From NCBI RefSeq assembly GCF_020745735.1, contig NW_026868308.1, forward strand, positions 1 through 57,852: a stretch of 57,852 bases of DNA, written 5' to 3'. Numbering within the stretch: position 1 is the first letter of the stretch; each line of letters begins with the position of its first letter. Shown in pieces: positions 7,001 to 57,752 of the stretch. Made by a program: the position numbers and the translations under genes. The stretch is from Hemiscyllium ocellatum. Lineage: Eukaryota. The notes below the pieces were generated by a model. That model was not told where the DNA came from. It saw nothing but the letters and a program-made list of their open reading frames with translations, and did not search any database.

Positions 7001-8020
7001 TCTCCCCCTTCCCTCAGTCCCCGAGCTTCCCTCCCATCTGTCGATTGGGCGGTGGGTGGGATTTCCGATCTCACCGAAACATGTTGTACCCTGTGGGGAT
7101 TCACCAGGGGGAGACACTGAGGGACATGGGGAGAGCGCGGGAGACTGGGAGATGGATAGATTGTTGGGGGGAGACACTGAGGGACACGGGGAGAGTGCGG
7201 GAGACTGGGAGATGGATAGATTGTTGGGGGGAGACACTGAGGGACACGGGGAGAGTGCGGGAGACTGGGAGATGGATAGATTGTTGGGGGGAGACACTGA
7301 GGGACATGGGGAGAGCGCGGGAGACTGGGAGATGGATAGATTGTTGGGGGGAGACACTGAGGGACACGGGGAGAGTGCGGGAGACTGGGAGATGGATAGA
7401 TTGTTGGGGGGAGACACTGAGGGACACGGGGAGAGTGCGGGAGACTGGGAGATGGATAGATTGTTGGGGGGAGACACTGAGGGACACGGGGAGAGTGTGG
7501 GAGACTGGGAGATGGATAGATTGTTGGGGGGAGACACTGAGGGACGTGGGGAGAGTGTGGGAGACTGGGAGATGGATAGATTGTTGGGGGGAGACACTGA
7601 GGGACGTGGGGAGAGTGCGGGAGACTGGGAGATGGATAGATTGTTGGGGGGAGACACTGAGGGACACGGGGAGAGTGCGGGAGACTGGAGATGGATAGAT
7701 TGTTGGGGGGAGACACTGAGGGACACGGGGAGAGTGTGGGAGACTGGGAGATGGATGGATTTCGAGTAGCTATTGAACTCGCTGCCTCTAATTCCTTTTT
7801 CTCTCATCTCTCGTCTCTCTCTCTCTCTCCGCGTCTGTGACCAGCCCAGGACAAGCGACTGTGGGACGCGGTGGCGGCGACGCACCTCCTGGTCGATCAG
7901 CTCTTCCCCCGGCTCCTAGCCGAAGCACGGGCAGTCGGCTGGAAAACCGACCGGAACCACCTCGGGGTGGACGAGTGGCGGGCCTGGTGGGGCCCTGGGG
8001 AGGGCAAGAAGGGGCGGTGA
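36..8020 (+). CDS. RUSF1: RUS family member 1 (C16orf58 / root UVB sensitive homolog, DUF647); 3' part only, 5' exons lie upstream of the window. Exons: 36-68, 1069-1174, 1893-1994, 2844-2914, 4717-4901, 5200-5257, 5745-5815, 6819-6977, 7845-8020 (stop TGA 8018-8020)
   Basis: Nine exons with AG/GT boundaries and matching phases splice to SKLDCDAKKWR-LFADVLNDVAIFLEILAP...-SIVGVSGGATRAALTVHQARRDNMADVSAKDGSQ-ETLVNL...-ALHLYANYRAVRSVVMCTLNQARL...-GWKTDRNHLGVDEWRAWW...GKKGR*. These match the hallmark motifs of human C16orf58 as I recall them. Confidence 0.95.
79..527. repeat. 20-21-bp minisatellite (ccctcagaacgcggccct / ccctcagaacgctgtct)
   Basis: About 22 tandem units starting right after the RUSF1 donor. 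Confidence 0.95.
530..945 (+). repeat. About 55-65-bp minisatellite, family A (gacagtgtagagggagctttactctgtatctaaccccgtgctgtccctggga)
   Basis: Tandem units; the same family occurs at 13265-13670 (+), 28515-28940 (-) and 46175-47080 (-). Confidence 0.95.
1388..1803. repeat. 40-bp minisatellite (ccctcgcacggggagcaatgccacgg...)
   Basis: About 10 tandem units. Confidence 0.95.
2300..2570 (-). mobile_element. Old LINE (CR1-clade) RT C-terminal fragment with a partial tandem duplication
   Basis: The minus strand reads [28 protein letters not shown]...RAGQRLG-like. Homologous to 21690-21945 and 30195-30680. Confidence 0.65.
2985..4596 (-). repeat. SINE remnant (HE1-like) whose internal ~55-bp segment is amplified into a ~1.5-kb array
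   Basis: Unit cctaacctgcacatccctgggcactacgggacaatttccccacggccaatccacc, preceded by the reverse complement of a CR1-type tail (ggccattcggccc). The array is seen directly; the SINE identity is from recollection. Confidence 0.75.
4902..5170 (+). repeat. 33-bp minisatellite, family C (gtcagcgccgagggagccccgcactgtgggagg)
   Basis: About 8 units; reverse-complement arrays occur at 20220-20567 and 48011-48680. Confidence 0.95.
5290..5715. repeat. About 70-bp minisatellite (ctgttattctgtatataaaccaccccgaacccctcgattagattccagt...)
   Basis: About 6 tandem units. Confidence 0.95.
5833..6752 (+). repeat. About 50-bp minisatellite, family B (aaaggacagtgtatctaacacaccccggtcccaga(ga)n(g)n)
   Basis: Tandem units; the same family occurs at 54076-57349. 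Confidence 0.95.
7107..7760. repeat. 60-bp minisatellite
   Basis: About 11 near-identical units with an exact 60-bp period. Confidence 0.97.
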
Positions 8021-8751: not shown

Positions 8752-9550
8752 CACACACACNNNNNNNNNNNNNNNNNNNNNNNNNNNNNNNNNNNNNNNN
8801 NNNNNNNNNNNNNNNNNNNNNNNNNNNNNNNNNNNNNNNNNNNNNNNNNNNNNNNNNNNNNNNNNNNNNNNNNNNNNNNNNNNNNNNNNNNNNNNNNNNN
8901 NNNNNNNNNNNNNNNNNNNNNNNNNNNNNNNNNNNCCCACACACACACAGTCACACCCACACACACACACACACTCACACTGACACACAGTCACACCCAC
9001 ATACACACTCACATACACACACACACACTGACACAGACACAGACACACACCCACAGTCACACNNNNNNNNNNNNNNNNNNNNNNNNNNNNNNNNNNNNNN
9101 NNNNNNNNNNNNNNNNNNNNNNNNNNNNNNNNNNNNNNNNNNNNNNNNNNNNNNNNNNNNNNNNNNNNNNNNNNNNNNNNNNNNNNNNNNNNNNNNNNNN
9201 NNNNNNNNNNNNNNNNNNNNNNNNNNNNNNNNNNNNNNNNNNNCTCCCACACAAACACAGACACACACCCACACACACACCCACACAGACACACACACCC
9301 ACACTCACACAGACATGCATACGCTTACACACACTGACACACATCCACACTCTCACTGACACCCACCCACACACAGACACACGCACCCACACAGGCGCGC
9401 GCGCACACACACACACACCCCTACACACACAGACACACATGCACCTGCACACACACCCACGCGCGTACACAGACACACACACCCACACGCGTATACACAC
9501 ACCCACACCCGCCAACACACACGCACACCCCCATGCGCTCACACACACAT
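8752..9550. repeat. (CA)n-rich degenerate microsatellite with N-gaps
   Basis: Seen directly in the sequence. Confidence 0.9.
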
Positions 9551-9898
9551 CGTGGCCGCGGGGAAGAATAAGCCGTCAGGTGGTCGCGTGGAAGAGAAAA
9601 ATAAACTGAAAAAAGACAATGAAAAGCTCTTTGCGGAGAATGTCTCCTTCCACTGTGTGCCTGGAAAGGCAGAGTAGGCCATTCAGCCCTCTCCCTCCTG
9701 GCCCGCTACTCCATGGGATTCTCTGTCTCAACCCCCCCCCTCCTCGGCCCCACAGTCGGAGCGATTTCCCGCTCACCTTCTCGGATGTGCCCGGCCCTGG
9801 CAGAGACCTCTGAGCCCGTGAGGAACTTGGTCCGCCCCTCTCTGTGCTACCGCCCCCCCCTTACCCTGAGACTGCGTCCCCAGGTGCTGGACTCCACT

Positions 9899-12373
9899 GT
9901 TGTGGGGGAGACTGAGCACCTCCGCTGTGGGGACACTGAGCACCTCCGCCGTGGGACACTGAGCACCTCCGCTGTGGGGACACTGAGCACCTCCGCCGTG
10001 AGGACACTGAGCACCTCCGCTGTGGGGACACTGAGCACCTCCGCCGTGGGGACACTGAGCAGCTCCGCCGTGAGGAGACTGAGCAGCTCCGCCGTGAGGA
10101 CACCGAGCACCTCCGCCGTGGGGACACTGAGCACCTCCGCCGTGGGGAGACTGAGCACCTCCGCCGTGGGGACACTGAGCACCTCCGCCGTGGGACACTG
10201 AGCACCTCCGCCGTGGGGAGACTGAGCACCTCCGCCGTGGGGAGACTGAGCACCTCCGCCGTGGGGACACTGAGCACCTCCGCCGTGGGGACACTGAGCA
10301 CCTCCGCCGTGGGGACACTGAGCACCTCCGCCGTGGGGACACTGAGCACCTCCGCCGTGGGACACTGAGCAGCTCCGCCGTGGGGACACTGAGCAGCTCC
10401 GCCGTGGGGAGACTGAGCACCTCCGCCGTGGGGAGACTGAGCACCTCCGCCGTGGGGAGACTGAGCACCTCCGCCGTGGGGACACTGAGCACCTCCGCCG
10501 TGGGGACACTGAGCACCTCCGCCGTGGGACACTGAGCAGCTCCGCCGTGGGGACACTGGGGGTCTCCTCCGCCGTGGGGACACTGGGGGTCTCCTCCGCC
10601 GTGGGGACACTGAGCAGCTCCACCATGGGGACACTGGGGGTCTCCTCCGCCGTGGGGACACTGGGGGTCTCCTCCGCCGTGGGGACACTGAGCAGCTCCG
10701 CCATGGGGACACTGGGGGTCTCCTCCGCCGTGGGGACACTGAGCAGCTCCGCCATGGGGACACTGGGGGTCTCCTCCGCCGTGGGGACACTGAGCAGCTC
10801 CGCCATGGGGACACTGGGGGTCTCCTCCGCCGTGGGGACACTGAGCAGCTCCGCCATGGGGACACTGGGGGTCTCCTCCGCCGTGGGGACACTGAGCACC
10901 TCCGCCGTGGGACACTGAGCAGCTCCGCCATGGGGACACTGGGGGTCTCCTCCGCCGTGGGGACACTGAGCAGCTCCGCCGTGAGGACACTGGGGGTCTC
11001 CTCCGCCGTGGGGACACTGAGCAGCTCCGCCATGGGGACACTGGGGGTCTCCTCCGCCGTGGGGACACTGAGCAGCTCCGCCATGGGGACACTGGGGGTC
11101 TCCTCCGCCGTGGGGACACTGAGCAGCTCCGCCATGGGGACACTGGGGGTCTCCTCCGCCGTGGGGACACTGAGCAGCTCCGCCATGGGGACACTGGGGG
11201 TCTCCTCCGCCGTGGGGACACTGAGCAGCTCCGCCATGGGGACACTGGGGGTCTCCTCCGCCGTGGGGACACTGAGCACCTCCGCCGTGGGACACTGAGC
11301 AGCTCCGCCATGGGGACACTGGGGGTCTCCTCCGCCGTGGGGACACTGAGCAGCTCCGCCGTGGGACACTGAGCAGCTCCGCCATGGGGACACTGGGGGT
11401 CACCTCCGCCGTGGGGACACTGAGCAGCTCCGCCGTGAGGACACTGGGGGTCTCCTCCGCCGTGGGGACACTGAGCTGCTCCACCATGGGGACACTGGGG
11501 GTCTCCTCTGCCGTGGGGACACTGAGCAGCTCCGCCATGGGGACACTGGGGGTCTCCTCCGCCGTGGGGACACTGAGCAGCTCCACCATGGGGACACTGG
11601 GGGTCTCCTCCGCCGTGGGGACACTGAGCAGCTCCGCCATGGGGACACTGGGGGTCTCCTCCGCCGTGGGGACACTGAGCAGCTCCGCCGTGGGACACTG
11701 AGCAGCTCCGCCATGGGGACACTGGGGGTCTCCTCCGCCGTGGGGACACTGAGCAGCTCCGCCGTGAGGACACTGGGGGTCTCCTCCGCCGTGGGGACAC
11801 TGAGCAGCTCCACCATGGGGACACTGGGGGTCTCCTCCGCCGTGGGGACACTGAGCAGCTCCACCATGGGGACACTGGGGGTCTCCTCCGCCGTGGGGAC
11901 ACTGAGCAGCTCCGCCATGGGGACACTGGGGGTCTCCTCCGCCGTGGGGACACTGAGCAGCTCCGCCATGGGGACACTGGGGGTCTCCTCCGCCGTGGGG
12001 ACACTGAGCACCTCCGCCGTGGGACACTGAGCAGCTCCGCCATGGGGACACTGGGGGTCTCCTCCGCCGTGGGGACACTGAGCAGCTCCGCCGTGGGACA
12101 CTGAGCAGCTCCGCCATGGGGACACTGGGGGTCTCCTCCGCCGTGGGGACACTGAGCACCTCCGCCGTGGGACACTGAGCAGCTCCGCCATGGGGACACT
12201 GGGGGTCTCCTCCGCCGTGGGGACACTGAGCAGCTCCGCCGTGGGGACACTGAGCAGCTCCGCCGTGGGACACTGAGCAGCTCCGCCGTGAGGACACTGG
12301 GGGTCTCCTCCGCCGTGGGGACACTGAGCAGCTCCGCCGTGAGGACACTGGGGGTCTCCTCCGCCGTGGGGAC
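9899..12373. repeat. 23/24/27-bp GC-rich minisatellite upstream of PUS3 (ggggacactgagcagctccgccgt / ggggacactgggggtctcctccgccgt)
   Basis: Roughly 100 units of two alternating variants; reverse complement of the repeat in PUS3 coding exon 1. Confidence 0.97.
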
Positions 12374-12525
12374 CGGGGGAACGGTCGAGCGGGGGAGGTG
12401 CTTCCGCCCGGAAGTCGCTGTTGGGGGAAGAGGGGGACGGACCGGAAGTGACCCGCCGGGACCGGAAGCCGCGACGAGGGACCGGCAGAGGGGACGGACC
12501 TCCCGGGAGCGGAGATGGCGGCGCC
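12374..12525 (+). promoter_or_regulatory. Putative PUS3 core promoter (CpG-rich, ETS/GABP-type CCGGAAG motifs, YY1-like GAGATGGCGGC over the ATG)
   Basis: CCGGAAGT at 12408 and 12442 and CCGGAAG at 12462, in a unique CpG-rich spacer directly before the start codon. Confidence 0.65.
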
Positions 12526-15500
12526 CGCGGAGTGTCCCCACGTCGGAGCTGAACCCCAGTGTCCCCCTGGTGGAGCTGAACCCCAGTGTCCCCACGGCGG
12601 AGGAGACCCCCAGTGTCCCCACGGTGGAGCTGAACCCCAGTGTCCCCACGGCGGAGGAGACCCCCAGTGTCCCCACGGCGGAGCTGAACCCCAGTGTCCC
12701 CACAGCGGAGGAGACCCCCAGTGTCCCCACGGCGGAGCTGAACCCCAGTGTCCCCACAGCGGAGGAGACCCCCAGTGTCCACACGGCGGAGCTGAACCCC
12801 AGTGTCCCCACGGTGGAGCTGCTGCTTGTCCCCACGGCGGAGGAGACCCCCAGCACCCCCCTGGCGGAGCTGCGCGGTGTCCCCACGGCGGAGCTGCGCG
12901 GTGTCCCCACGGCGGAGGAGTGCCCCAGCGTCCCCACGGCGGAGCTGCGCGGTGTCCCCGCGGCGGAGCGGGCCCCCGGCGGAGGAAGGGGCAGCGTCCC
13001 TTTGACTTTAGCCAGCACGGGCGGCGGCGGGTGGCCCTGAGGCTGGCCTACCTGGGCTGGGGTTACCAGGGCTTCGCCAGCCAGGAGAACACACCCAACA
13101 CGGTGGAGGAGAGGCTGTTCGAGGCCTTGCTCAAGACCCGGCTGGTGGAGAGCCGTCAGAACGCCAACTACCACCGCAGCGGGCGCACCGACAAGGGGGT
13201 CAGCGCCTTCGGGCAGGTGAGAGAGAGAGAGACACACAACCTCGTCACCCCCTTCCCCATGTACTGTCCCTGTCCCTGTCCCTGGGACAGTGTAGAGGGA
13301 GCTTTACTCTGTATCTAACCCCATGCTGTCCCTGTCTCTGGGACAGTGTAGAGGGAGCTTTACCCTGTATCTAACCCCCTGCTGTCCCTGTCCCTGGGAC
13401 AGTGTAGAGGGAGCTTTACCCTGTATCTAACCCCGTGCTGTCCCTGTCTCTGGGACAGTGTAGAGGAAGCTTTACTCTGTATCTAACCCCGTGCTGTCCC
13501 TGTCCCTGGGATGTGGGGGACAGTGTAGAGGGAGCTTTACTCTGTATCTAACCCCGTGCTGTCCCTGTCCCTGGGATGGGGTGGGACAGTGTAGAGGGAG
13601 CTTTACTCTGTATCTAACCCCGTGCTGCCCCTGGGATGCGGTGGGAGGGCGGTGTAGAGGGAGCTTTACCCTCCAGCCCTCCCTGTGCACTGATCCCGTT
13701 GACTCAGACGTGACCCTGGCATTTGAACAGCCCTTTGAGAACCCCCTTAAACGTTGCCCCCATCGCCCGCCTCTCCCCAGGTCTGGCCGCACTTGTCTTA
13801 TACAGCACCGTCTCGCCTTCATCCGTTCCGGGGCCCCGTTCACGAGCTGAAAAGGTTCACGAACTAAAGAGTCCGCGAACACGATTCAATTTTTTTTATC
13901 CCCCCGGTTTGAATTAATGTTCAAAGTCTGGTTGAAGATTTGTAGCTCGGGTGTCCGTTGTTGTGGTTCTGCTCGCCGAGCTGGAAGGTTTTGCTGCAAA
14001 CGTTTCGTCCCCTGGCTAGGGAACATCATCAGTGCCGTTGGAGCCTCGTGTGAAGCGCTGCTTTGATGTTCCTTCCGGTATTTATAGTGGTTTGTTCTTG
14101 CCGCTTCCGGGTGTCAGTTCCAGCTGTAGTAGTTTGTATATGGGGTCCAGGTCCGTGTGTCTGTTGATGGAGTTTGTGGATGAATGCCATGCCTCTAGGA
14201 ATTCCCTGGCTGTTCTCTGTCTGGCTTGTCCTATGATGGTAGTGTTGTCCCAGTCAAATTCATGTTGCTTGTTGTCTGAGTGTGTGGCTACTAGGGATAG
14301 CTGGTCGTGTCGTTTCGTGGCTAGCTGATGTTCATGGATGCGGGTTGTTAGCTGTCTTCCTGTTTGTCCTATGTAGTGTTTTGTGCAGTCCTTGCATGGG
14401 ATTTTGTAAACTACGTTAGTTTGGCTCGTGCTGGCTATTGGGTCCTTCGTTCTAGTGAGTTGTTATCTGAGTGTGGCTGTTGGCTTGTGTGCCGTTATGA
14501 GTCCTAAGGGTCGCAGTAGTCTGGCTGTCAGTTCTGGCCACAAAACGACACGACCAGCTATCCCTAGTAGCCACACACTCAGACAACCAGGAACATGAAT
14601 TTGACTGGGAAAACGCCACTATCATAGGACAAGCTAGACAGAGAACAGCCAGGGAATTCCTAGAGGCATAGCATTCATCCACAAACTCCATTAACAGACA
14701 CTTGGACCTGGACCCCACATACAAACTACTACAGCTGAAACTGACACCCGGAAGCAGCAAGAACACACCACTATAAATACCGGAAGGAACATCAAAGCAG
14801 CGCTTCACACGAGGCTCCAACGGCACTGATGATGTTCCCTAGCCAGGGGACGAAACGTTTGCAGCAAAACCTTCCAGCTCGGCGAGCAGAACCACACAAC
14901 AACTGAATTAACGTAATTCCAACTGGCCCCCTTCCCCAGCCCCGGAAAACGTAAACGTTGTTCTCTCTAACGTTATTTCGTCACGAGCGAGATCGCACGC
15001 GCGGGCACCGTCCTCGCGTTCGGACTCTTCATACCCTCCGTCGTTTCACGCCACGGGGTCGCGCCCGCTTTCCCACTTCCTGGGGGGGGAGGGGGGGCCG
15101 TAAATCGGGGCTAATTTAATACTAAAAAAAACAATGAAAGCGAGCGTAAGAAAGTTTGGGACGTAGACGACGGACGCTGCGCGCGCCAACCGGGCGAGAT
15201 CACGCGAGGGCTTCTGCGTTCAAAGCAGAACACGGAAACCGCACGGGGTTTTTTTTTTTGAGATTGGACCTTGGATTTTGGACGGTTTTACGTGCGATCC
15301 TGTTCGTGAACGGACGCCGTGGCGAGGCCCCTCACCTCCTGGCACGGACAGTGGAGGAGATGGGGGGGGGGGGAGTGGAGTTGCCCGGAGCCGATGGTTT
15401 TTCTGACCTTGGGAGAGAGTTGCGCTGGCTTTCCTGTCTCCTGGTGGATGGAGAGTTCCCTTCATCCCCCTGCTCCCCCCCGTTGTCCCTCTCTGCCTCC

Positions 15501-22835: not shown

Positions 22836-23715
22836 GAAGGGGCGGGGCCAGAGAGACAGTTGGGTCTGAAGGGGCGGGGTCAGGGTGAGTTGGGTATGAA
22901 GGGGCGGGGCCAGAGTGAGTGGGGTATGAAGGGGCGGGGTCAGGGTGACAGTTGGGTATGAAGGGGCGGGGTCAGAGAGAGTGGGGTATGAAGGGGCGGG
23001 GTCAGAGTGAGAGGGGTATGAAGGGGCGGGGTCAGAGTGAGAGGGGTATGAAGGGGCGGGGTCAGAGTGAGTGGGGTATGAAGGGGCGGGGTCAGAGTGA
23101 CAGTTGGGTATGAAGGGGCGGGGTCAGAGTGAGAGGGGTATGAAGGGGCGGGGTCAGAGTGACAGTTGGGTATGAAGGGGCGGGGTCAGAGTGAGAGGGG
23201 TATGAAGGGGCGGGGTCAGAGTGAGAGGGGTATGAAGGGGCGGGGTCAGAGTGACAGTTGGGTATGAAGGGGCGGGGTCAGAGTGACAGTTGGGTATGAA
23301 GGGGCGGGGTCAGAGTGAGTGGGGTATGAAGGGGCGGGGTCAGAGTGAGAGGGGTATGAAGGGGCGGGGTCAGAGTGACAGTTGGGTATGAAGGGGCGGG
23401 GCCAGAGTGACAGTTGGGTATGAAGGGGCGGGGTCAGAGTGACAGTTGGGTATGAAGGGGCGGGGTCAGAGAGTGGGGTATGAAGGGGCGGGGTCAGAGT
23501 GAGTGGCGCATGAAGGGGCGGGGTCAGAGTGAGTTGGGTATGAAGGGGCGGGGTCAGAGTGAGTGGCGCATGAAGGGGCGGGGTCAGAGTGAGTTGGGTA
23601 TGAAGGGGCGGGGTCAGAGTGAGTGGCGCATGAAGGGGCGGGGTCAGAGTGAGTTGGATATGAAGGGGCGGGGTCAGAGTGACGTTCGGATTGAAGGGGC
23701 GGGGTCAGAGTGACG
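22836..23715. repeat. About 30-bp GC-box minisatellite (tgaaggggcggggtcagagtga...)
   Basis: About 29 units, each containing GGGGCGGGG. Confidence 0.95.
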
Positions 23716-23949
23716 TTCAGGATGGAAGAGGCGGGGTTGGAGTGACGTTTCGATTGAATGGGCGGGTTGGCGCTACCGGAAGGGGCGGGCTAACAGTGGC
23801 CGTTGGTGTTTAAATGCCCGGAAGAGGCGGGGTCGGAGTGACAGCGTGCGCACGGACGGGCCGGAAGAGGCGGAGTCGGAGTGACAGCGTGCGCACGGAC
23901 GGGCCGGAAGAGGCGGGGTCAGTGACGGTTGGAGCCGTTGGTCCCGGTA
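23680..23949 (+). promoter_or_regulatory. Putative RPUSD4 promoter: GC boxes, TGACGT half-sites, CCGGAAG ETS sites and NRF1-like GCGTGCGCA within a 43-bp duplication
   Basis: CCGGAAG at 23776, 23818, 23861 and 23904; TGACGT three times between 23680 and 23750; CpG-rich and directly upstream of the ATG. Confidence 0.6.
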
Positions 23950-26900
23950 ATGGCGGCGGCGGGGGGCCTGTGCGGACGGAGGCTCGGCCCCGGCTTCCTG
24001 CGGCGCGGGCGGTCAGGCCCAGGCCGAGGGATCCGCCGCAACCTCCTGTCCGTCCCCAACCCTCACCCCTCCCAGGACCCGGGGTCAGGAGGTCAACAGG
24101 TGGGGGAGGGGGCGGGGCCCGTGGTGGCGGGGGCGGGGCCCCGTGTGGGGAGGGGGCGGGGGCCCCGTGTGGGGAGGGGGCGGGGGCCCCGTGTGGGGAG
24201 GGCCCCCCGTGTGGGGAGGGCCCCGTGTGGGGAGGGGGCGGGGCCCCGTGTGGGGAGGGGGCGGGGCCTGTGATGGCGTGGGCGGGGCCTGTGATGGCGT
24301 GGCCGGGGCCCCGTGTGGGGAGGGGGCGGGGCCCCGTGTGGGGAGGGGGCGGGGCCAGTGTTGTAGGTGGGCGGGGTCCTGTGGTGGATGGGGCGCGGCC
24401 TGTGCTGGAGGGGCGGGGTCCCGTGGTGGAGGGGGGCGGGGTCCCGTGGTGGAGGGGGGGGTCTATGCTGGAGGTGGGCAAGCCTGTAATGAGGGGCGGG
24501 GCTTGTGAAGGAGGGGCGGGGCTCAATAGGTGATGTCAGTGGTTTGGGGGAGGGGCCATTGCGTCCAGAGACGGGGGTGGACCCCCATGACGACTATCTC
24601 CCCCCCCCCCCCCCCCCCCTTACCCTCCCTGACTGGGTGATGGTCCCTGTGTGATTATCCCCCCCCCCCCTTACCCTCCCTGACTGGGTGATGGTCCCTG
24701 TGTGATTATCCCCCCCCCCTTACCCTCCCTGACTGGGTGATGGTCCCTGTGTGATTATCCCCCACCCCCCCTCCCCCTCCCTGACTGGGTGATGGTCCCT
24801 GTGTGATTATCCCCCCCCCCCCCCCCTTACCCTCCCTGACTGGGTGATGGTCCCTGTGTGATTATCCCCCCCCCCCTTACCCTCCCTGACTGGGTGATGG
24901 TCCCTGTGTGATTATCCCCCCCCCCCCCCCCTTACCCTCCCTGACTGGGTGATGGTCCCTGTGTGATTATCCCCCCCCCCCCCCCCCTTACCCTCCCTGA
25001 CTGGGTGATGGTCCCTGTGTGATTATCCCCCCCCCCCTTACCCTCCCTGACTGGGTGATGGTCCCTGTGTGATTATCCCCCCCCCCCCCCCCTTACCCTC
25101 CCTGACTGGGTGATGGTCCCTGTGTGATTATCCCCCCCCCCCCCCTTACCCTCCCTGACTGGGTGATGGTCCCTGTGTGATTATCCCCCCCCCCCCCTTA
25201 CCCTCCCTGACTGGGTGATGGTCCCTGTGTGATTATCCCCCCCCCCCCCCCTTACCCTCCCTGACTGGGTGATGGTCCCTGTGTGATTATCCCCCCCCCC
25301 CCTTACCCTCCCTGACTGGGTGATGGTCCCTGTGTGATTATCCCCCACCCCCCCTTACCCTCCCTGACTGGGTGATGGTCCCTGTGTGATTATCCCCCAC
25401 CCCGCTTACCCTCCCTGACTGGGTGATGGTCCCTGTGTGATTATCCCCCCCCCCCCCCTTACCCTCCCTGACTGGGTGATGGTCCCTGTGTGATTATCCC
25501 CCCCCCCCCCTTACCCTCCCTGACTGGGTGATGGTCCCTGTGTGATTATCCCCCCCCCTTACCCTCCCTGACTGGGTGATGGTCCCTGTGTGATTATCCC
25601 CCCCCCTTACCCTCCCTGACTGGGTGATGGTCCCTGTGTGATTATCCCCCCTCCCCCCCTGACTGGGTGATGGTCCCTGTGTGATTATCCCCCCTCCCCC
25701 CCTGACTGGGTGATGGTCCCTGTGAGCTGTCTGGGTCTCGTGGGGATCATGGGGACAAGTCGCTCAATGCTGAACAGTTCTCTCTCTCTCTCCCTCTCCC
25801 CTCTCCCCCTTCCTCTCCACCCCCCCCCAGCCCCCGGTTACTCGGTCAGTACAGGAACTCCAGCGACTGAGCCAGCGCCTGCAGAGGGTGCACCCGAATG
25901 TTCTGGCCAAGGTGCTCCGGAAGAGCCTCACCCAGCACGGGGACAGCCTGCTCGCAGTTAATAAACCCTACGGGGTTCCCGTGACAGGTAAGGGGGGGCT
26001 CCCCACCTCCCAGCAAGCAGGGGCTGGGGGAGGAGGGCAATGCAACGCGGTCACTCACACCTCCACTGTGGTCTCATTCCACTCTCTCTCTCTCTCGCAC
26101 CACCCTCCCTCCCTCCCTCTCCATCTCTCTCTCCCCCCTCTCTTCCCCCCATCCTCCTCCCCCCCTCTCCCCTCCCCCCCCTCTCCCCTCCCCTCCCTCC
26201 CTCTCCCCATGTCTCCCTCCCTCTCCCCATGTCTCCCTTTCCCCTCCTCTCTCCCCCCACTCCCCCTCTCTCTCCCCCCTCTCTCCCCTCCTCCCTCCCC
26301 CTCTCCCCTCCCCCACTGTGGAGCAGCAGCCCCAGGCCTGGGTCCCAGCGTTGAGGAAGTGCTCCCGGTGCTGGCCAAGATGCAGTTTGGGATGAAGGCC
26401 GAGCCCCTGCACCTGTGTCACCGCCTGGATAAAGACAGCAGCGGTGCCATGCTGCTGGCCCGGGACCTCCAGTCAGCACAGGCCGTACGCCACCTCTTCA
26501 GGCAGCACCAGGTCACCAAGAAATACTGGTATAGCAGGGCCAACAAACTGTCCATTCACTCCATCCATCCGGGGGTGGGTGTGTGTAACTGTGTTCCCCC
26601 TGTCTCTCACTCCGTCTGGGTGTGTGTGTGTGTGTGTGTAACTGTGTTCCCCCTGTCTCTCACTCCGTCTGGGTGGGTGTGTGTGTGTGTAACTGTGTTC
26701 CCCCTGTCTCTCGCTCCGTCTGGGTGTGTGTGTGTAACTGTGTTCCCCCTGTCTCTCCCTCCGTCTGGGTGTGTGTGTGTGTGTAACTGTGTTCCCCCTG
26801 TCTCTCACTCCGTCTGGGTGCGTGTGTGTGTGTGTAACTGTGTTCCCCCTGTCTCTCACTCCGTCTGGGTGTGTGTGTGTAACTGTGTTCCCCCTGTCTC

Positions 26901-53700: not shown

Positions 53701-56700
53701 TGGGGAGAGACGGTGGGGATTGAGGGATGAGGTTGAAGATGGCGAGGATTGAGGAATTGAGGTGGGGTTGGGTGGATAGAGGGATAGAGGGAGATGATTG
53801 TAGGTGGATGAATATTCTGTGAATCCTGACCTTCCAGAGCCCGCAAGGCTGCAGGGTCCGTGAATGTCCCTTCCACAAGAGTGTCCAGAATTCTCGGGTG
53901 GCTGCTGAACAGCTGACTGTAGAAAGTACAGCAAACAGACGAAGGGCTTCGATCCATGGTCCCACAGATAAAGATAAGGCACTACAACACAGCACAGACC
54001 AGGCAGAGACATCAGCAGCAGCACCACAGCTTCCCAAACATACACACGGCACAGTGAAACACAGAGGGAATCAGGGTATCGAACACACCCCGGTCCCAGA
54101 GAGAGAGAGGGGGGGAAGGACAGTGTATCGAACACACCCCGGTCCCAGAGAGAGAGAGGGGAAAGGACAGTGTATCTAACACACCCTGGTCCCAGAGAGA
54201 GGAGGGGGGGGGGAAAAGGACAGTGTATCTAACACACCCCGGTCCCAGAGAGAGAGAGAGGGGAAGGACAGTGTATCGAACACACCCCGGTCCCAGAGAG
54301 AGAGAGGGGAAAGGACAGTGTATCTAACACACCCCGGTCCCAGAGAGAGAGAGGGAGAAAGGACAGTGTATCTAACACACCCCGGTCCCAGAGAGAGAGA
54401 GGGGGAAGGACAGTGTATCGAACACACCCCGGTCCCAGAGAGAGAGGGGGGAAAGGACAGTGTATCTAACACACCCCGGTCCCAGAGAGAGAGAGGGGGA
54501 AAGGACAGTGTATCTAACACACCCCGGTCCCAGAGAGAGAGAGAGGGGAAAGGACAGTGTATCTAACACACCCCGGTCCCAGAGAGAGAGAGGGGGGAAA
54601 GGACAGTGTATCTAACACACCCCGGTCCCAGAGAGGGGGGGGGGGGGGGGGAAAGGACAGTGTATCTAACACACCCCGGTCCCAGAGAGGGAGAGGGGGT
54701 GAAAGGACAGTGTATCTAACACACCCCGGTCCCAGAGAGAGAGAGGGGGAAGGACAGTGTATCGAACACACCCCGGTCCCAGAGAGAGAGGGGGGAAAGG
54801 ACAGTGTATCTAACACACCCCGCTCCCAGAGAGAGAGAGGGGGAAAGGACAGTGTATCTAACACACCCCGGTCCCAGAGAGAGAGAGAGGGGAAAGGACA
54901 GTGTATCTAACACACCCCGGTCCCAGAGAGAGAGAGGGGGGAAAGGACAGTGTATCTAACACACCCCGGTCCCAGAGAGGGGGGGGGGGGGGGGGGAAAG
55001 GACAGTGTATCTAACACACCCCGGTCCCAGAGAGGGAGAGGGGGTGAAAGGACAGTGTATCTAACACACCCGGTCCCAGAGAGGGAGAGGGGGTGAAAGG
55101 ACAGTGTATCTAACACACCCCGGTCCCAGAGAGAGAGAGAGGGGAAAGGACAGTGTATCTAACACACCCCGGTCCCAGAGAGAGAGAGGGGGGAAAGGAC
55201 AGTGTATCTAACACACCCCGGTCCCAGAGAGAGAGAGGGGGGAAAGGACAGTGTATCTAACACACCCCGGTCCCAGAGAGAGAGGGGGGAAAGGACAGTG
55301 TATCTAACACACCCCGGTCCCAGAGAGAGACAGAGGGGAAAGGACAGTGTATCTAACACACCCGGTCCCAGAGAGAGAGGGGGAAAGGACAGTGTATCTA
55401 ACACACCCCGGTCCCAGAGAGAGAGAGGGGGGAAAGGACAGTGTATCTAACACACCCCGGTCCCAGAAAGAGAGAGAGGGGAAAGGACAGTGTATCTAAC
55501 ACACCCCGGTCCCAGAGAGAGAGAGGGGGAAAGGACAGTGTATCTAACACACCCCGGTCCCAGAGAGAGAGAGGGGGGAAAGGACAGGGTATCTAACACA
55601 CCCCGGTCCCAGAGAGAGAGAGAGGGGGGAAAGGACAGTGTATCTAACATACCCCGGTCCCAGAGAGAGACAGAGGGGAAAGGACAGTGTATCTAACACA
55701 CCCCGGTCCCAGAGAGAGAGAGAGAGGGGGTGAAAGGACAGTGTATCTAACACACCCCGGTCCCAGAGAGAGAGAGAGGGGAAAGGACAGTGTATCTAAC
55801 ACACCCCGGTCCCAGAGAGAGAGAGGGGGGAAAGGACAGTGTATCTAACACACCCCGGTCCCAGAGAGAGAGAGGGGGGAAAGGACAGTGTATCTAACAC
55901 ACCCCGGTCCCAGAGAGAGAGAGGGGGGAAAGGACAGTGTATCTAACACACCCCGGTCCCAGAGAGAGAGAGAGGGGGAAAGGACAGTGTATCTAACACA
56001 CCCCGGTCCCAGAGAGAGAGAGAGAGGGGGGAAAGGACAGTGTATCTAACACACCCCGGTCCCAGAGAGGGGGGGGGGGGGGGCGCGGGAAGGACAGTGT
56101 ATCTAACACACCCCGGTCCCAGAGAGAGAGAGGGGGGAAAGGACAGTGTATCTAACACACCCCGGTCCCAGAGAGAGAGAGGGGGGAAAGGACAGTGTAT
56201 CTAACACACCCCGGTCCCAGAGAGAGAGGGGGAAAGGACAGTGTATCTAACACCCCCCGGTCCCAGAGAGAGAGAGAGGGGGGAAAGGACAGTGTATCTA
56301 ACACACCCCGGTCCCTGAGAGAGAGAGGGTGGGGAAAGGACAGTGTATCTCACACACCCCGGTCCCAGAGAGAGAGAGAGGGGGGAAAGGACAGTGTATC
56401 TAACACACCCCGGTCCCAGAGAGAGAGAGGGGTAAAGGACAGTGTATCTAACACACCCCGGTCCCAGAGAGAGAGAGGGGGGAAAGAACAGTGTATCTAA
56501 CACACCCCGGTCCCAGAGAGAGAGAGAGGGGGAAAGGACAGTGTATCTAACACACCCCGGTCCCAGAGAGAGAGGGGGGAAAGGACAGTGTATCTAACAC
56601 ACCCCGGTCCCAGAGAGAGAGGGGGAAAGGACAGTGTATCTAACACACCCCGGTCCAAGAGAGAGAGAGAGAGGGGAAAGGACAGTGTATCTAACACACA

Positions 56701-57752
56701 CCGGTCCCAGAGAGAGAGAGAGGGGAAAGGACAGTGTATCTAACACACCCCGGTCCAGAGAGAGAGAGAGGGGGGAAAGGACAGTGTATCTAACACACCC
56801 CGGTCCCAGAGAGGTGGGGGGAAAGGACAGTGTATCTAACACACCCCGGTCCCAGAGAGAGAGAGAGGGGAAAGGACAGTGTATCTAACACACCCCGGTC
56901 CCAGAGAGAGAGAGAGGGGAAAGGACAGTGTATCTAACACACCCCGGTCCCAGAGAGAGAGAGAGGGGGAAAGGACAGTGTATCTAACACACCCCCGGTC
57001 CCAGAGAGAGAGAGAAGGGGGAAAGGACAGTGTATCTAACACACCCCGGTCCCAGAGAGGGGGGGCGGGGGGGGAGGGGAAAGGACAGTGTATCTAACAC
57101 ACCCCGGTCCCAGAGAGGGAGAGGGGGTGAAAGGACAGTGTATCTAACATACCCCGGTCCCAGAGAGAGAGAGAGGGGAAAGGACAGTGTATCTAACACA
57201 CCCCGGTCCCAGAGAGAGAGAGAGGGGAAAGGACAGTGTATCTAACACACCCCGGTCCCAGAGAGAGAGAGAGAGGGAAAGGACAGTGTATCTAACACAC
57301 CCCGGTCCCAGAGAGAGAGAGAGAGGGGGGAAAGGACAGTGTATCTAACTGGCAGTGACATTACCCAGTACTCTGCCTTACCATCACGCTTTGCTCCCTG
57401 AGGGTGATCTCACGCTCTGCGGCCGGGGACAGGAGGGTTTCCAGTAGTTGGACAAACTGCTGAGCCGACTGTTCAAACACCTGGAGGCTGGAAGGTAAAG
57501 GGACAAGAAACAATAATCAGCCGGTCCTTTGGGGTCCAAAGTCTGGCTCTCCCACCCGTCCAGCACGGTGTCGGAGAGCGGGACAGTTCGGGGATGATGG
57601 AATGACACTGGCGGGATCACGGTGGGGAGAATGTGAGCTGGAACAGCCTCTTACCCACAGCTGGTTCCCGAGGATTCTGTATCAAAGTCACTGGAGAAAT
57701 ACACAGCGAGGACGGCCAGCAGGTCCAAAAGGATCCTCCCACACCACGGCTG
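32306..57752 (-). CDS. STK36: Serine/threonine kinase 36 (Fused homolog), C-terminal non-kinase/ARM-HEAT region of about 817 aa; kinase-domain exons lie beyond the window. Exons in transcript order: 57752-57655, 57487-57382, 53981-53831, 52419-52310, 51783-51676, 50053-49961, 49541-49447, 48858-48795, 47207-47097, 46086-46012, 44360-44189, 42900-42753, 40025-39836, 34013-33234, 32458-32306
   Basis: Fifteen exons with AG/GT boundaries, consistent phases and 2454 nt in total. Peptides [52 protein letters not shown] and [13 protein letters not shown]|[13 protein letters not shown]...[10 protein letters not shown] match human STK36 as I recall it. Confidence 0.92.
32549..33200. repeat. Compound repeat ((ca)n-ctcctgtacctggggaggtctctctaaccc-(tc)n)
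   Basis: About 11 units; an inverted copy lies at 45667-45988. Confidence 0.93.
35112..39781. repeat. Compound satellite ((gt)n-ggggtctgagaggctgtgtgggaatgggagagggggag) with several N-gaps
   Basis: About 4.7 kb, seen directly. Confidence 0.96.
40121..42752 (-). repeat. 132-bp satellite derived from the 3' end of STK36 exon 42900-42753; about 10 units at 40121-41441 and 1 at 42611-42752, split by a CR1 insertion
   Basis: Period 132 (gatc at 40121, 40253, 40385). The unit translates to [23 protein letters not shown], as in the real exon. Confidence 0.93.
41442..42610 (+). mobile_element. 5'-truncated, internally deleted CR1-type LINE (RT fragment and 3' tail)
   Basis: Reads [65 protein letters not shown] and [14 protein letters not shown], with frameshifts, and ends in the tail gggccgaatggc...ttatgtcttatg. 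Flanked by tgggat (41436-41441 and 42611-42616). Confidence 0.92.
43370..44155. repeat. Purine-rich ~20-bp repeat (gggacaggcagagggaggt)
   Basis: Seen directly in the sequence. Confidence 0.9.
45667..45988. repeat. Inverted copy of the 32549-33200 compound repeat (gapped)
   Basis: gggttagagagacctccccagatacaggag(tg)n. Confidence 0.85.
46175..47080 (-). repeat. Minisatellite family A (reverse orientation)
   Basis: About 14 units. Confidence 0.95.
47336..47745. repeat. (GA)n-rich repeat (gagatagaggaggga)
   Basis: Seen directly in the sequence. Confidence 0.9.
48011..48680 (-). repeat. 33-bp minisatellite, family C
   Basis: About 20 units. Confidence 0.95.
49228..49440. mobile_element. Short palindromic non-autonomous element (76-bp perfect inverted repeat) with a hammerhead-like core, in an STK36 intron
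   Basis: 49228-49303 is the exact reverse complement of 49333-49408, with a 29-nt loop. The minus strand reads CTGAAGA-a-gggc-tcgt-gtcc-GAAAC-GTC. Confidence 0.7.
49725..49935 (-). mobile_element. Degraded CR1-like 3' tail
   Basis: The + strand cacaggcccttcggccc is the reverse complement of the gggccgaagggcctgtg tail motif seen in the other CR1 copies. Confidence 0.5.
50025..50430 (-). repeat. About 155-bp triplication of an STK36 acceptor plus exon start
   Basis: cacacagctgacagcaggagtac..aac(c/t)tgtacgggacagacaacac occurs at about 50026, 50184 and 50338. Confidence 0.85.
50440..51640. repeat. About 50-bp minisatellite (cagggagatatctgtacactgactggtgtctctcagtcccc(tc)n)
   Basis: About 20 units with a CA/TC interruption at 50700-50830. 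Confidence 0.95.
52517..52782. repeat. 42-bp minisatellite (cccggtctgggtcagaccgcactcggagccccgtgtacacct)
   Basis: About 6 units. Confidence 0.95.
52828..53680. repeat. 27-28-bp G-rich minisatellite (ggggacggagggagacggggagagggt)
   Basis: About 30 units. Confidence 0.95.
54076..57349 (+). repeat. Minisatellite family B, about 3.3 kb
   Basis: Same unit as 5833-6752. Confidence 0.97.

Follow-up and report, generated by a model that had tools for sequence, protein, structure and literature searches.

The first exon of PUS3, the gene for tRNA pseudouridine(38/39) synthase, was analysed in a stretch of 57,852 nucleotides from the epaulette shark, Hemiscyllium ocellatum (contig NW_026868308.1; the whole stretch is hereafter called the window), where it opens with a tandem array of 24- and 27-bp units encoding repeated Cys-Pro dipeptides. 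Taken together, the evidence makes it very probable that this array is an ancient, translated coding minisatellite, forming an N-terminal tail that is shared among elasmobranchs and whose copy number has shifted by lineage. As in coding minisatellites generally, the units lie head to tail inside an open reading frame (ORF), and each has a length divisible by three; the feature as a whole is a clade-wide case of a familiar kind, in which a known enzyme receives a low-complexity tail from a coding minisatellite. The argument rests on a pattern seen in sequences across species, and not on the reading frame within the window.

Tandem Repeats Finder reported a 27-bp array of 16.7 copies in exon 1 (12531-12969), and parsing by unit delimited a coding minisatellite at 12515-12977 (+ strand), made up of a partial first unit (MAAPAECPH), 16 full units (12 of 27 bp and four of 24 bp, 16/16 in codon phase 0), and a 16-bp degenerate end. 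The array has a higher-order period of 54 bp, with GGAEPQCPH and GGGDPQCPH units in its 5' part and GGAA[AR]CPH units in its 3' part. Reading from the ATG at 12515, the ORF passes from the repeat into a basic patch (RRRKGQ), the core RPFDFSQHGRRRVALRLAYLGWGYQGF, and the catalytic motif RTDKGVSAFGQ; the remainder of the exon (12978-13216, + strand) thus carries RRRKGQ followed by RPFDFS...RTDKGVSAFGQ, with the splice donor CAG/GTGAGA after position 13216. The resulting tail is 160 amino acids (aa) long and contains 15 cysteines, every one of them in a Cys-Pro dipeptide (13 CPH, one CPP, and one CPR). Both the unit parse and the ORF agree with an earlier sequence-only reading of this DNA, which had placed about 17 in-frame units with 15 Cys-Pro dipeptides between the sole Met and RPFDFS, and its claim that all coding units measure 24 or 27 bp holds for 16/16 of the parsed units.

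The identity of the gene is clear. Four exons with GT/AG borders throughout were located via conserved PUS3 motifs, all on the + strand (12515-13216, 19624-20177, 20594-20784, and 21996-22285, the last including the stop codon, with AATAAA at 22427-22432). Each translates exactly to the corresponding part of a public protein (P0130; 578 aa, tRNA pseudouridine(38/39) synthase, Hemiscyllium ocellatum), and the joined translation equals that protein, meaning that the repeat-bearing form of PUS3 is already a public gene model. P0130 contains the PseudoU_synth_1 domain (PF01416), and its identity to 29 PUS3 proteins of vertebrates ranges from 52 to 71%. In the 30-sequence alignment, residues R224, T225, D226, K227, G228, V229, S230, and A231 are invariant; this motif is encoded by exon 1, the codon of the catalytic Asp226 being 13190-13192. 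A Pfam search with exon 1 alone gave no match, because the domain is split across exons.

Orthologues gathered by a search with the stingray PUS3 provided ten further elasmobranch sources (five sharks, and five rays, skates or electric rays), and a GGAAQCP[P/H]-type N-terminal tail was present in 10/10 of them, with 1 to 31 Cys-Pro copies. Differences of this size between species are what an unstable array would show. The elasmobranch tails range from 61 to 322 aa and are rich in Gly, Pro, and Ala. Among the sharks, units are GGAAQCPP in Scyliorhinus canicula (12 Cys-Pro), GGGAAQCPP in Cetorhinus maximus (31), GGAAQCPP or GGGGGAQCPP in Carcharodon carcharias (27), SGGPQGGAAQCPP in Heptranchias perlo (13), and GGGPHGGAAQ[Q/S/R/C]PP in Heterodontus francisci (1). 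Narcine bancroftii has CDRxNQCPH-type units, with seven Cys-Pro dipeptides and 21 Cys in total, and the tails are short and degenerate in Rhinoraja longicauda (2), a skate-like mRNA contig (2), Mobula birostris (2, with GGAAQCPQ and GGEPQC), and Hypanus sabinus (1). Heptranchias (P0125) and Heterodontus (P0127) share a 13-aa unit, xGGP[Q/H]GGAAQ[C/x]PP, while lamniform and carcharhiniform units are of 8-10 aa; the ancestral shark unit may have been of the longer, 13-aa type.

Outside the elasmobranchs the tail is of another kind. In the fetched set, the helix motif [LIVM]xx[RK][LIVM]xx[LM]E occurs in the tails of 151/151 non-elasmobranch PUS3 proteins and in 0/13 elasmobranch sequences; the non-elasmobranch tails (n = 151) bear an LLxRVxELE-type helix, have a median length of 55 aa, and contain almost no Cys. 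The contrast previously drawn between the Cys-Pro-rich tail and a helical, human-type N-terminus extends to the elasmobranchs as a group. The skate-like mRNA contig (L001; Logan contig of 2158 nt, run SRR11241667) holds a complete spliced ORF behind a 5' untranslated region (5'UTR) of 236 nt, and runs without a break from the 5'UTR across the tail and on into exon 2. Its protein begins in the same way as that of H. ocellatum (MAA..EC), with ATG GCG GCC ... GAG TGC against the shark ATG GCG GCG ... GAG TGT. On our reading, the elasmobranch repeat tail would stand where bony vertebrates have a helical tail, and its copy number would rise and fall in each lineage through the gain and loss of units, perhaps by slippage or unequal exchange, under the constraint that the sole start codon should remain in frame with the catalytic domain.

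A second array of the same type, inverted and non-coding, lies upstream of PUS3 (9900-12373, - strand; 98 units of 24 and 27 bp, with a 51-bp period), and gives a measure of how much weight frame preservation can bear. Since the repeat lacks stop codons in each of its three frames (the upstream arm is crossed by ORFs of 1154, 833, and 510 aa), an open frame is uninformative by itself. None of the 16 coding units is frameshifting, compared with 13/98 in the non-coding arm (P about 0.10). Across species, no peptides of the other two frames were found in the tails of the ten other elasmobranch sources, and five long shark arrays are all frame-clean, with a joint probability of the order of 1e-6; this figure is a rough hand calculation, indicative only, which treats the arrays as independent and applies to them the rate of frameshifting units seen in the non-coding arm of Hemiscyllium, and the gene models behind it also favour open frames.

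Several observations weigh against the reading of an ancient, translated minisatellite. Frame preservation inside the window is, on its own, weak evidence (P about 0.1), and synonymous and nonsynonymous differences among units, which number 2 and 5 for the coding arm and 6 and 5 for the non-coding one, are too few to reveal selection on the protein. The models of the orthologues were predicted computationally, a procedure that would choose an open frame regardless, and no chimaera or other outgroup sequence was found, so that either tail type may be the ancestral one. As for the cysteines, Heterodontus has retained the scaffold of the repeat with only one Cys in 125 aa, Cys-Pro copy number spans 30-fold with dosage unconstrained, and the 'Cys-Pro' codons are kept as well in the non-coding arm (91/99 units) as in the coding arm (14/15).

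The observations on cysteine also speak for the alternative that survives best, which we rate just short of an even chance, namely that the tail is a neutral passenger: a self-perpetuating, GC-rich minisatellite in a dispensable part of the protein, constrained only in its frame and in the absence of stops, with Cys-Pro as a by-product. The lack of stops in all three frames, the variation from 1 to 31 copies, the loss of cysteines in Heterodontus despite a retained repeat, the upkeep of the same codons in non-coding DNA, and the fact that the human tail is not needed for catalysis are all consistent with it. Set against these is the survival of a Q-C-P core across the shark-ray split, in 10/11 sources, including the short, non-homogenised batoid tails, where concerted evolution cannot account for that survival. 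Moreover, the codons for QCPHG differ between skate and shark only at synonymous third positions (CAA TGT CCC CAT GGC in L001, CAG TGT CCC CAC GGC in shark), and the tails of bony vertebrates are almost free of Cys. The conserved Q-C-P core could be a selected thiol site, whether for a ligand (heme or a soft metal) or as a redox switch, a proposal that we consider serious, though somewhat below even probability.

What the minisatellite-encoded tail might do is best approached through the human enzyme. In human PUS3, residues 1-51 are unresolved by cryo-electron microscopy, and deletion of residues 1-57 leaves wild-type activity but gives soluble oligomers instead of dimers (PMC11258540). By analogy, the elasmobranch tail would most likely be flexible and catalytically dispensable, and would serve to keep the PUS3 dimer soluble; a role in solubility or self-association would tolerate big changes in length. 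AlphaFold assigned residues 1-160 a predicted local distance difference test score (pLDDT) of ~30 and zero secondary structure, in a model that is weak overall (mean pLDDT 50, 30-sequence alignment); we take this as weak support for the disorder that the tail probably has.

A more specific proposal, that the Cys-Pro units are heme-regulatory motifs and that heme binding at the tail regulates PUS3, appears unlikely. In its favour, there are 15 CP dipeptides in a region predicted to be flexible (pLDDT ~30, in the same weak model). Surveys of Cys-Pro heme motifs describe one or two aliphatic residues together with a polar S/T/Q residue before the Cys, and in many cases an aromatic one following the Pro (PMC10377097); the A-A-Q-C-P of sharks fits the reported aliphatic (often Ala) and S/T/Q preference, and the adjacent His of the H. 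ocellatum CPH would favour six-coordinate peptide complexes (PMC10377097). However, Cys-Pro is followed by P/H-G-G, without an aromatic or hydrophobic residue, the units are neutral or acidic (E, D), most sharks have Pro instead of His, and literature searches gave no link between PUS3 and heme. The residues on the N-terminal side of CP, AAQ in most sharks, are EPQ or DPQ in H. ocellatum, a poorer fit to the heme motif. We are similarly doubtful of a wider version, in which an old, multivalent Cys-Pro module common to all elasmobranchs would sense heme, a soft metal or redox state and so adjust how soluble or stable PUS3 is, or its oligomer state. If true, such a sensor would link pseudouridine 38/39 in tRNA to heme or redox status in a manner not known from other vertebrates.

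Where translation starts bears on whether the repeat is part of the protein. The ATG at 12515-12517 (+ strand; strong context GAGATGG, with G at -3 and +4) is the single ATG in any frame within 12374-13216, and an in-frame TGA stands at 12449, 22 codons 5' of it. Invariant alignment columns begin at R161, and the catalytic fold starts ~10 residues past the repeat; the start of the protein must therefore lie upstream of the repeat. Between the start codon and the upstream array is a unique spacer of 141 bp (12374-12514, + strand), without ATG, which has a GC content of 74.5%, a CpG observed/expected ratio of 1.08, and three CCGGAAG (ETS-type) sites inside 61 bp (12408, 12442, and 12462). Judging from these motifs, it resembles the compact promoter of a housekeeping gene followed by a short 5'UTR, and we regard it as a putative core promoter. 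CCGGAAG is enriched across the window as a whole (21 found vs 7.4 expected), with a second cluster just 5' of the next gene.

That the repeat lies outside the protein, either as 5'UTR or because an unannotated first exon, an internal intron or a non-AUG start near 12975 leaves it out, is in our view very unlikely. There are weak GT and AG dinucleotides inside the repeat that could be cited for it. On the other hand, exon 1 has no second ATG before a fold that begins so close to the repeat, the skate-like mRNA contig is unbroken from 5'UTR via the tail to exon 2, and the architecture is identical in all elasmobranch models. The claim that the repeat is not spliced out also stands, the public gene model having no such intron. 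Pairs of donor-like ACG/GTGGAG and acceptor-like CCCCACAG/C sites that might bound an internal intron were inspected by eye and rejected, as their use would shift the frame.

The relation between the two arrays bears on the origin of the repeat. Tandem Repeats Finder placed a 24/51-bp array at 10002-12373, and as the RUSF1-like gene (+ strand) ends near 8020 and PUS3 comes next, the upstream array is intergenic. Read on the minus strand, it encodes GGAAQCPH, GGGDPQCPH, and GGGAQCPH, with GGAAQCPH (24 bp) alternating with GGGDPQCPH (27 bp), and in reverse complement it is 82-86% identical to the coding arm. The 13 frame-breaking units comprise 12 of 23 bp and one of 25 bp, in line with the frameshifting 23-bp units that the sequence-only reading had reported there. 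The 24+27-bp register of the upstream arm is kept in the 3' part of the coding array, and in the 5' part GGAAQ has been replaced by GGAEPQ, a gain of 3 bp. GGGDPQCPH occurs in the tail of no other species among the elasmobranch sources compared; this specificity to Hemiscyllium points to an inverted duplication within the Hemiscyllium lineage, later than the origin of that unit. Because it shares this unit and carries frameshifts, the upstream arm looks like a non-coding copy and not the source, although the direction of copying is one that we infer. Such a copy would then have grown to 98 units and be in decay, gathering frameshifting units as expected where coding constraint is absent.

By the same token, a recent exonisation in this species, with the upstream non-coding array as the source and one arm captured into the ORF, is highly improbable. 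It would accord with the far larger size of the upstream arm (98 vs 17 units), and with the closer match of the upstream GGAAQCPH than of the coding GGAEPQCPH to the pan-shark consensus GGAAQCPP. But it would require close relatives without a coding repeat, and the comparison of chondrichthyan N-termini, which had been proposed as a check, found a related tail in 10/10 other elasmobranch sources. The retention of the older 24+27-bp register in the 3' part of the coding array, and the combination of frameshifts and lineage-specific GGGDPQCPH in the upstream arm, likewise point to copying from coding to non-coding DNA. The coding repeat is thus old and was not exonised here, given the tail in ten other elasmobranch sources, and the earlier proposal of an exonised minisatellite is not supported, a GGAAQCP[P/H] tail being already present in the PUS3 of sharks, rays, skates, and an electric ray. 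The scaffold is small, unplaced, and full of repeats and N runs, which could be cited for a mis-assembled array length or frame. Such an artefact is barely credible, given that the surroundings of both arrays (9244-16851) contain no N runs, the coding array is in frame and internally ordered, and the feature recurs in other species that were assembled independently.

Some further properties of the locus may be recorded. Within 9900-12990, the 141-bp putative promoter spacer is enclosed between inverted arms of about 2.47 kb and 0.46 kb that are 82-86% complementary, a geometry that might fold into hairpins or cruciforms and lack stability. Of the two strands, the G-rich one (GGGGACACTGGGGG) is + in the upstream arm, whereas in the coding arm it serves as the template. 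Intron 1 of PUS3 contains a 56-bp tandem repeat (13270-13633, 6.2 copies, unit GGGACAGTGTAGAGGGAGCTTTACTCTGTATCTAACCCC), whose unit recurs across the window, e.g. at 54000-57200, and is probably a satellite derived from a short interspersed nuclear element.

The gene order is RUSF1-like (PF04884), PUS3, and an RluA-type synthase (PF00849), all on the + strand, and is the same in Scyliorhinus canicula (small-spotted catshark). Four CCGGAAG sites, three of them within a 43-bp tandem repeat, lie at 23776-23920, 40-170 bp upstream of the start of the RluA-type synthase (about 23950), so that two unrelated pseudouridine synthase genes adjoin, each behind a cluster of ETS sites. GC-rich minisatellites with 30/60-bp and 24-bp units lie on either side of the start of this downstream synthase, at 23500-23745 and 24103-24200; minisatellites near promoters seem to be common on this scaffold.

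As a housekeeping enzyme, PUS3 is conserved, and in people the loss of it leads to intellectual disability. Seen in this light, the minisatellite gives a vertebrate class with a different PUS3 tail, conserved in site across the shark-ray split while its copies vary 30-fold. It also provides a natural series for probing the function of the tail (1, 2, 7, 12, 13, 15, 27, and 31 copies, plus a lineage nearly free of Cys), and a system in which one can ask whether long-lived coding minisatellites persist via selection or by their own dynamics, with the inverted non-coding copy in H. ocellatum as a built-in neutral control. The human PUS3 structure paper terms the N-terminal tail 'previously uncharacterized' (PMC11258540), and our literature search found no paper describing such a feature in shark PUS3. 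A word-based search with residues 1-160 returned only P0130 itself, the Cetorhinus PUS3, and low-complexity bacterial matches. A search with the repeat alone against 1.84 billion representatives returned unrelated low-complexity repeats (PHGGGYPQP, KSPHNPAEP) and no Cys-Pro tail outside PUS3. The closest match to the shark repeat by identity (63%) was a protein of 194 aa (P0228) with PHGGGYPQP repeats, which resemble the prion octarepeat and contain no Cys; it has hydrophobic stretches at its N-terminus and near its C-terminus.

Among known systems, the nearest counterpart by position is the tail of human and other tetrapod PUS3 (residues 1 to about 57), which occupies the same site, directly before the basic patch and RPFDFS. 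The bony-vertebrate tail differs from that of elasmobranchs in its length of about 55 aa, its charged and helical character (LLxRVxELExEV), and its near-total lack of Cys. Heme-regulatory proteins (HAP1, BACH1/2, ALAS1, HO-2, and IRP2) are alike in having several CP dipeptides in a flexible region, whereas the H. ocellatum tail consists of tandem copies of one unit, which makes this a resemblance and not membership. The octarepeat of the prion protein (PHGGGWGQ) is N-terminal, disordered, rich in Gly, Pro, and His, encoded by GC-rich units of 24/27 bp, variable in copy number, and metal-binding. Compared with PHGGGDPQ of Hemiscyllium, 6/8 positions match; the prion unit, however, has Trp and no Cys, most shark PUS3 units are without His, and the two are not homologous. 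Coding minisatellites in general, known as variable-number tandem repeats, show the same homogenisation within species and divergence between species in unit type and number. The PUS3 array differs from these in two respects: it has lasted for an unusually long time at a single orthologous site, through the whole elasmobranch crown, and it is accompanied by an inverted, non-coding copy of itself on the other side of the putative promoter.

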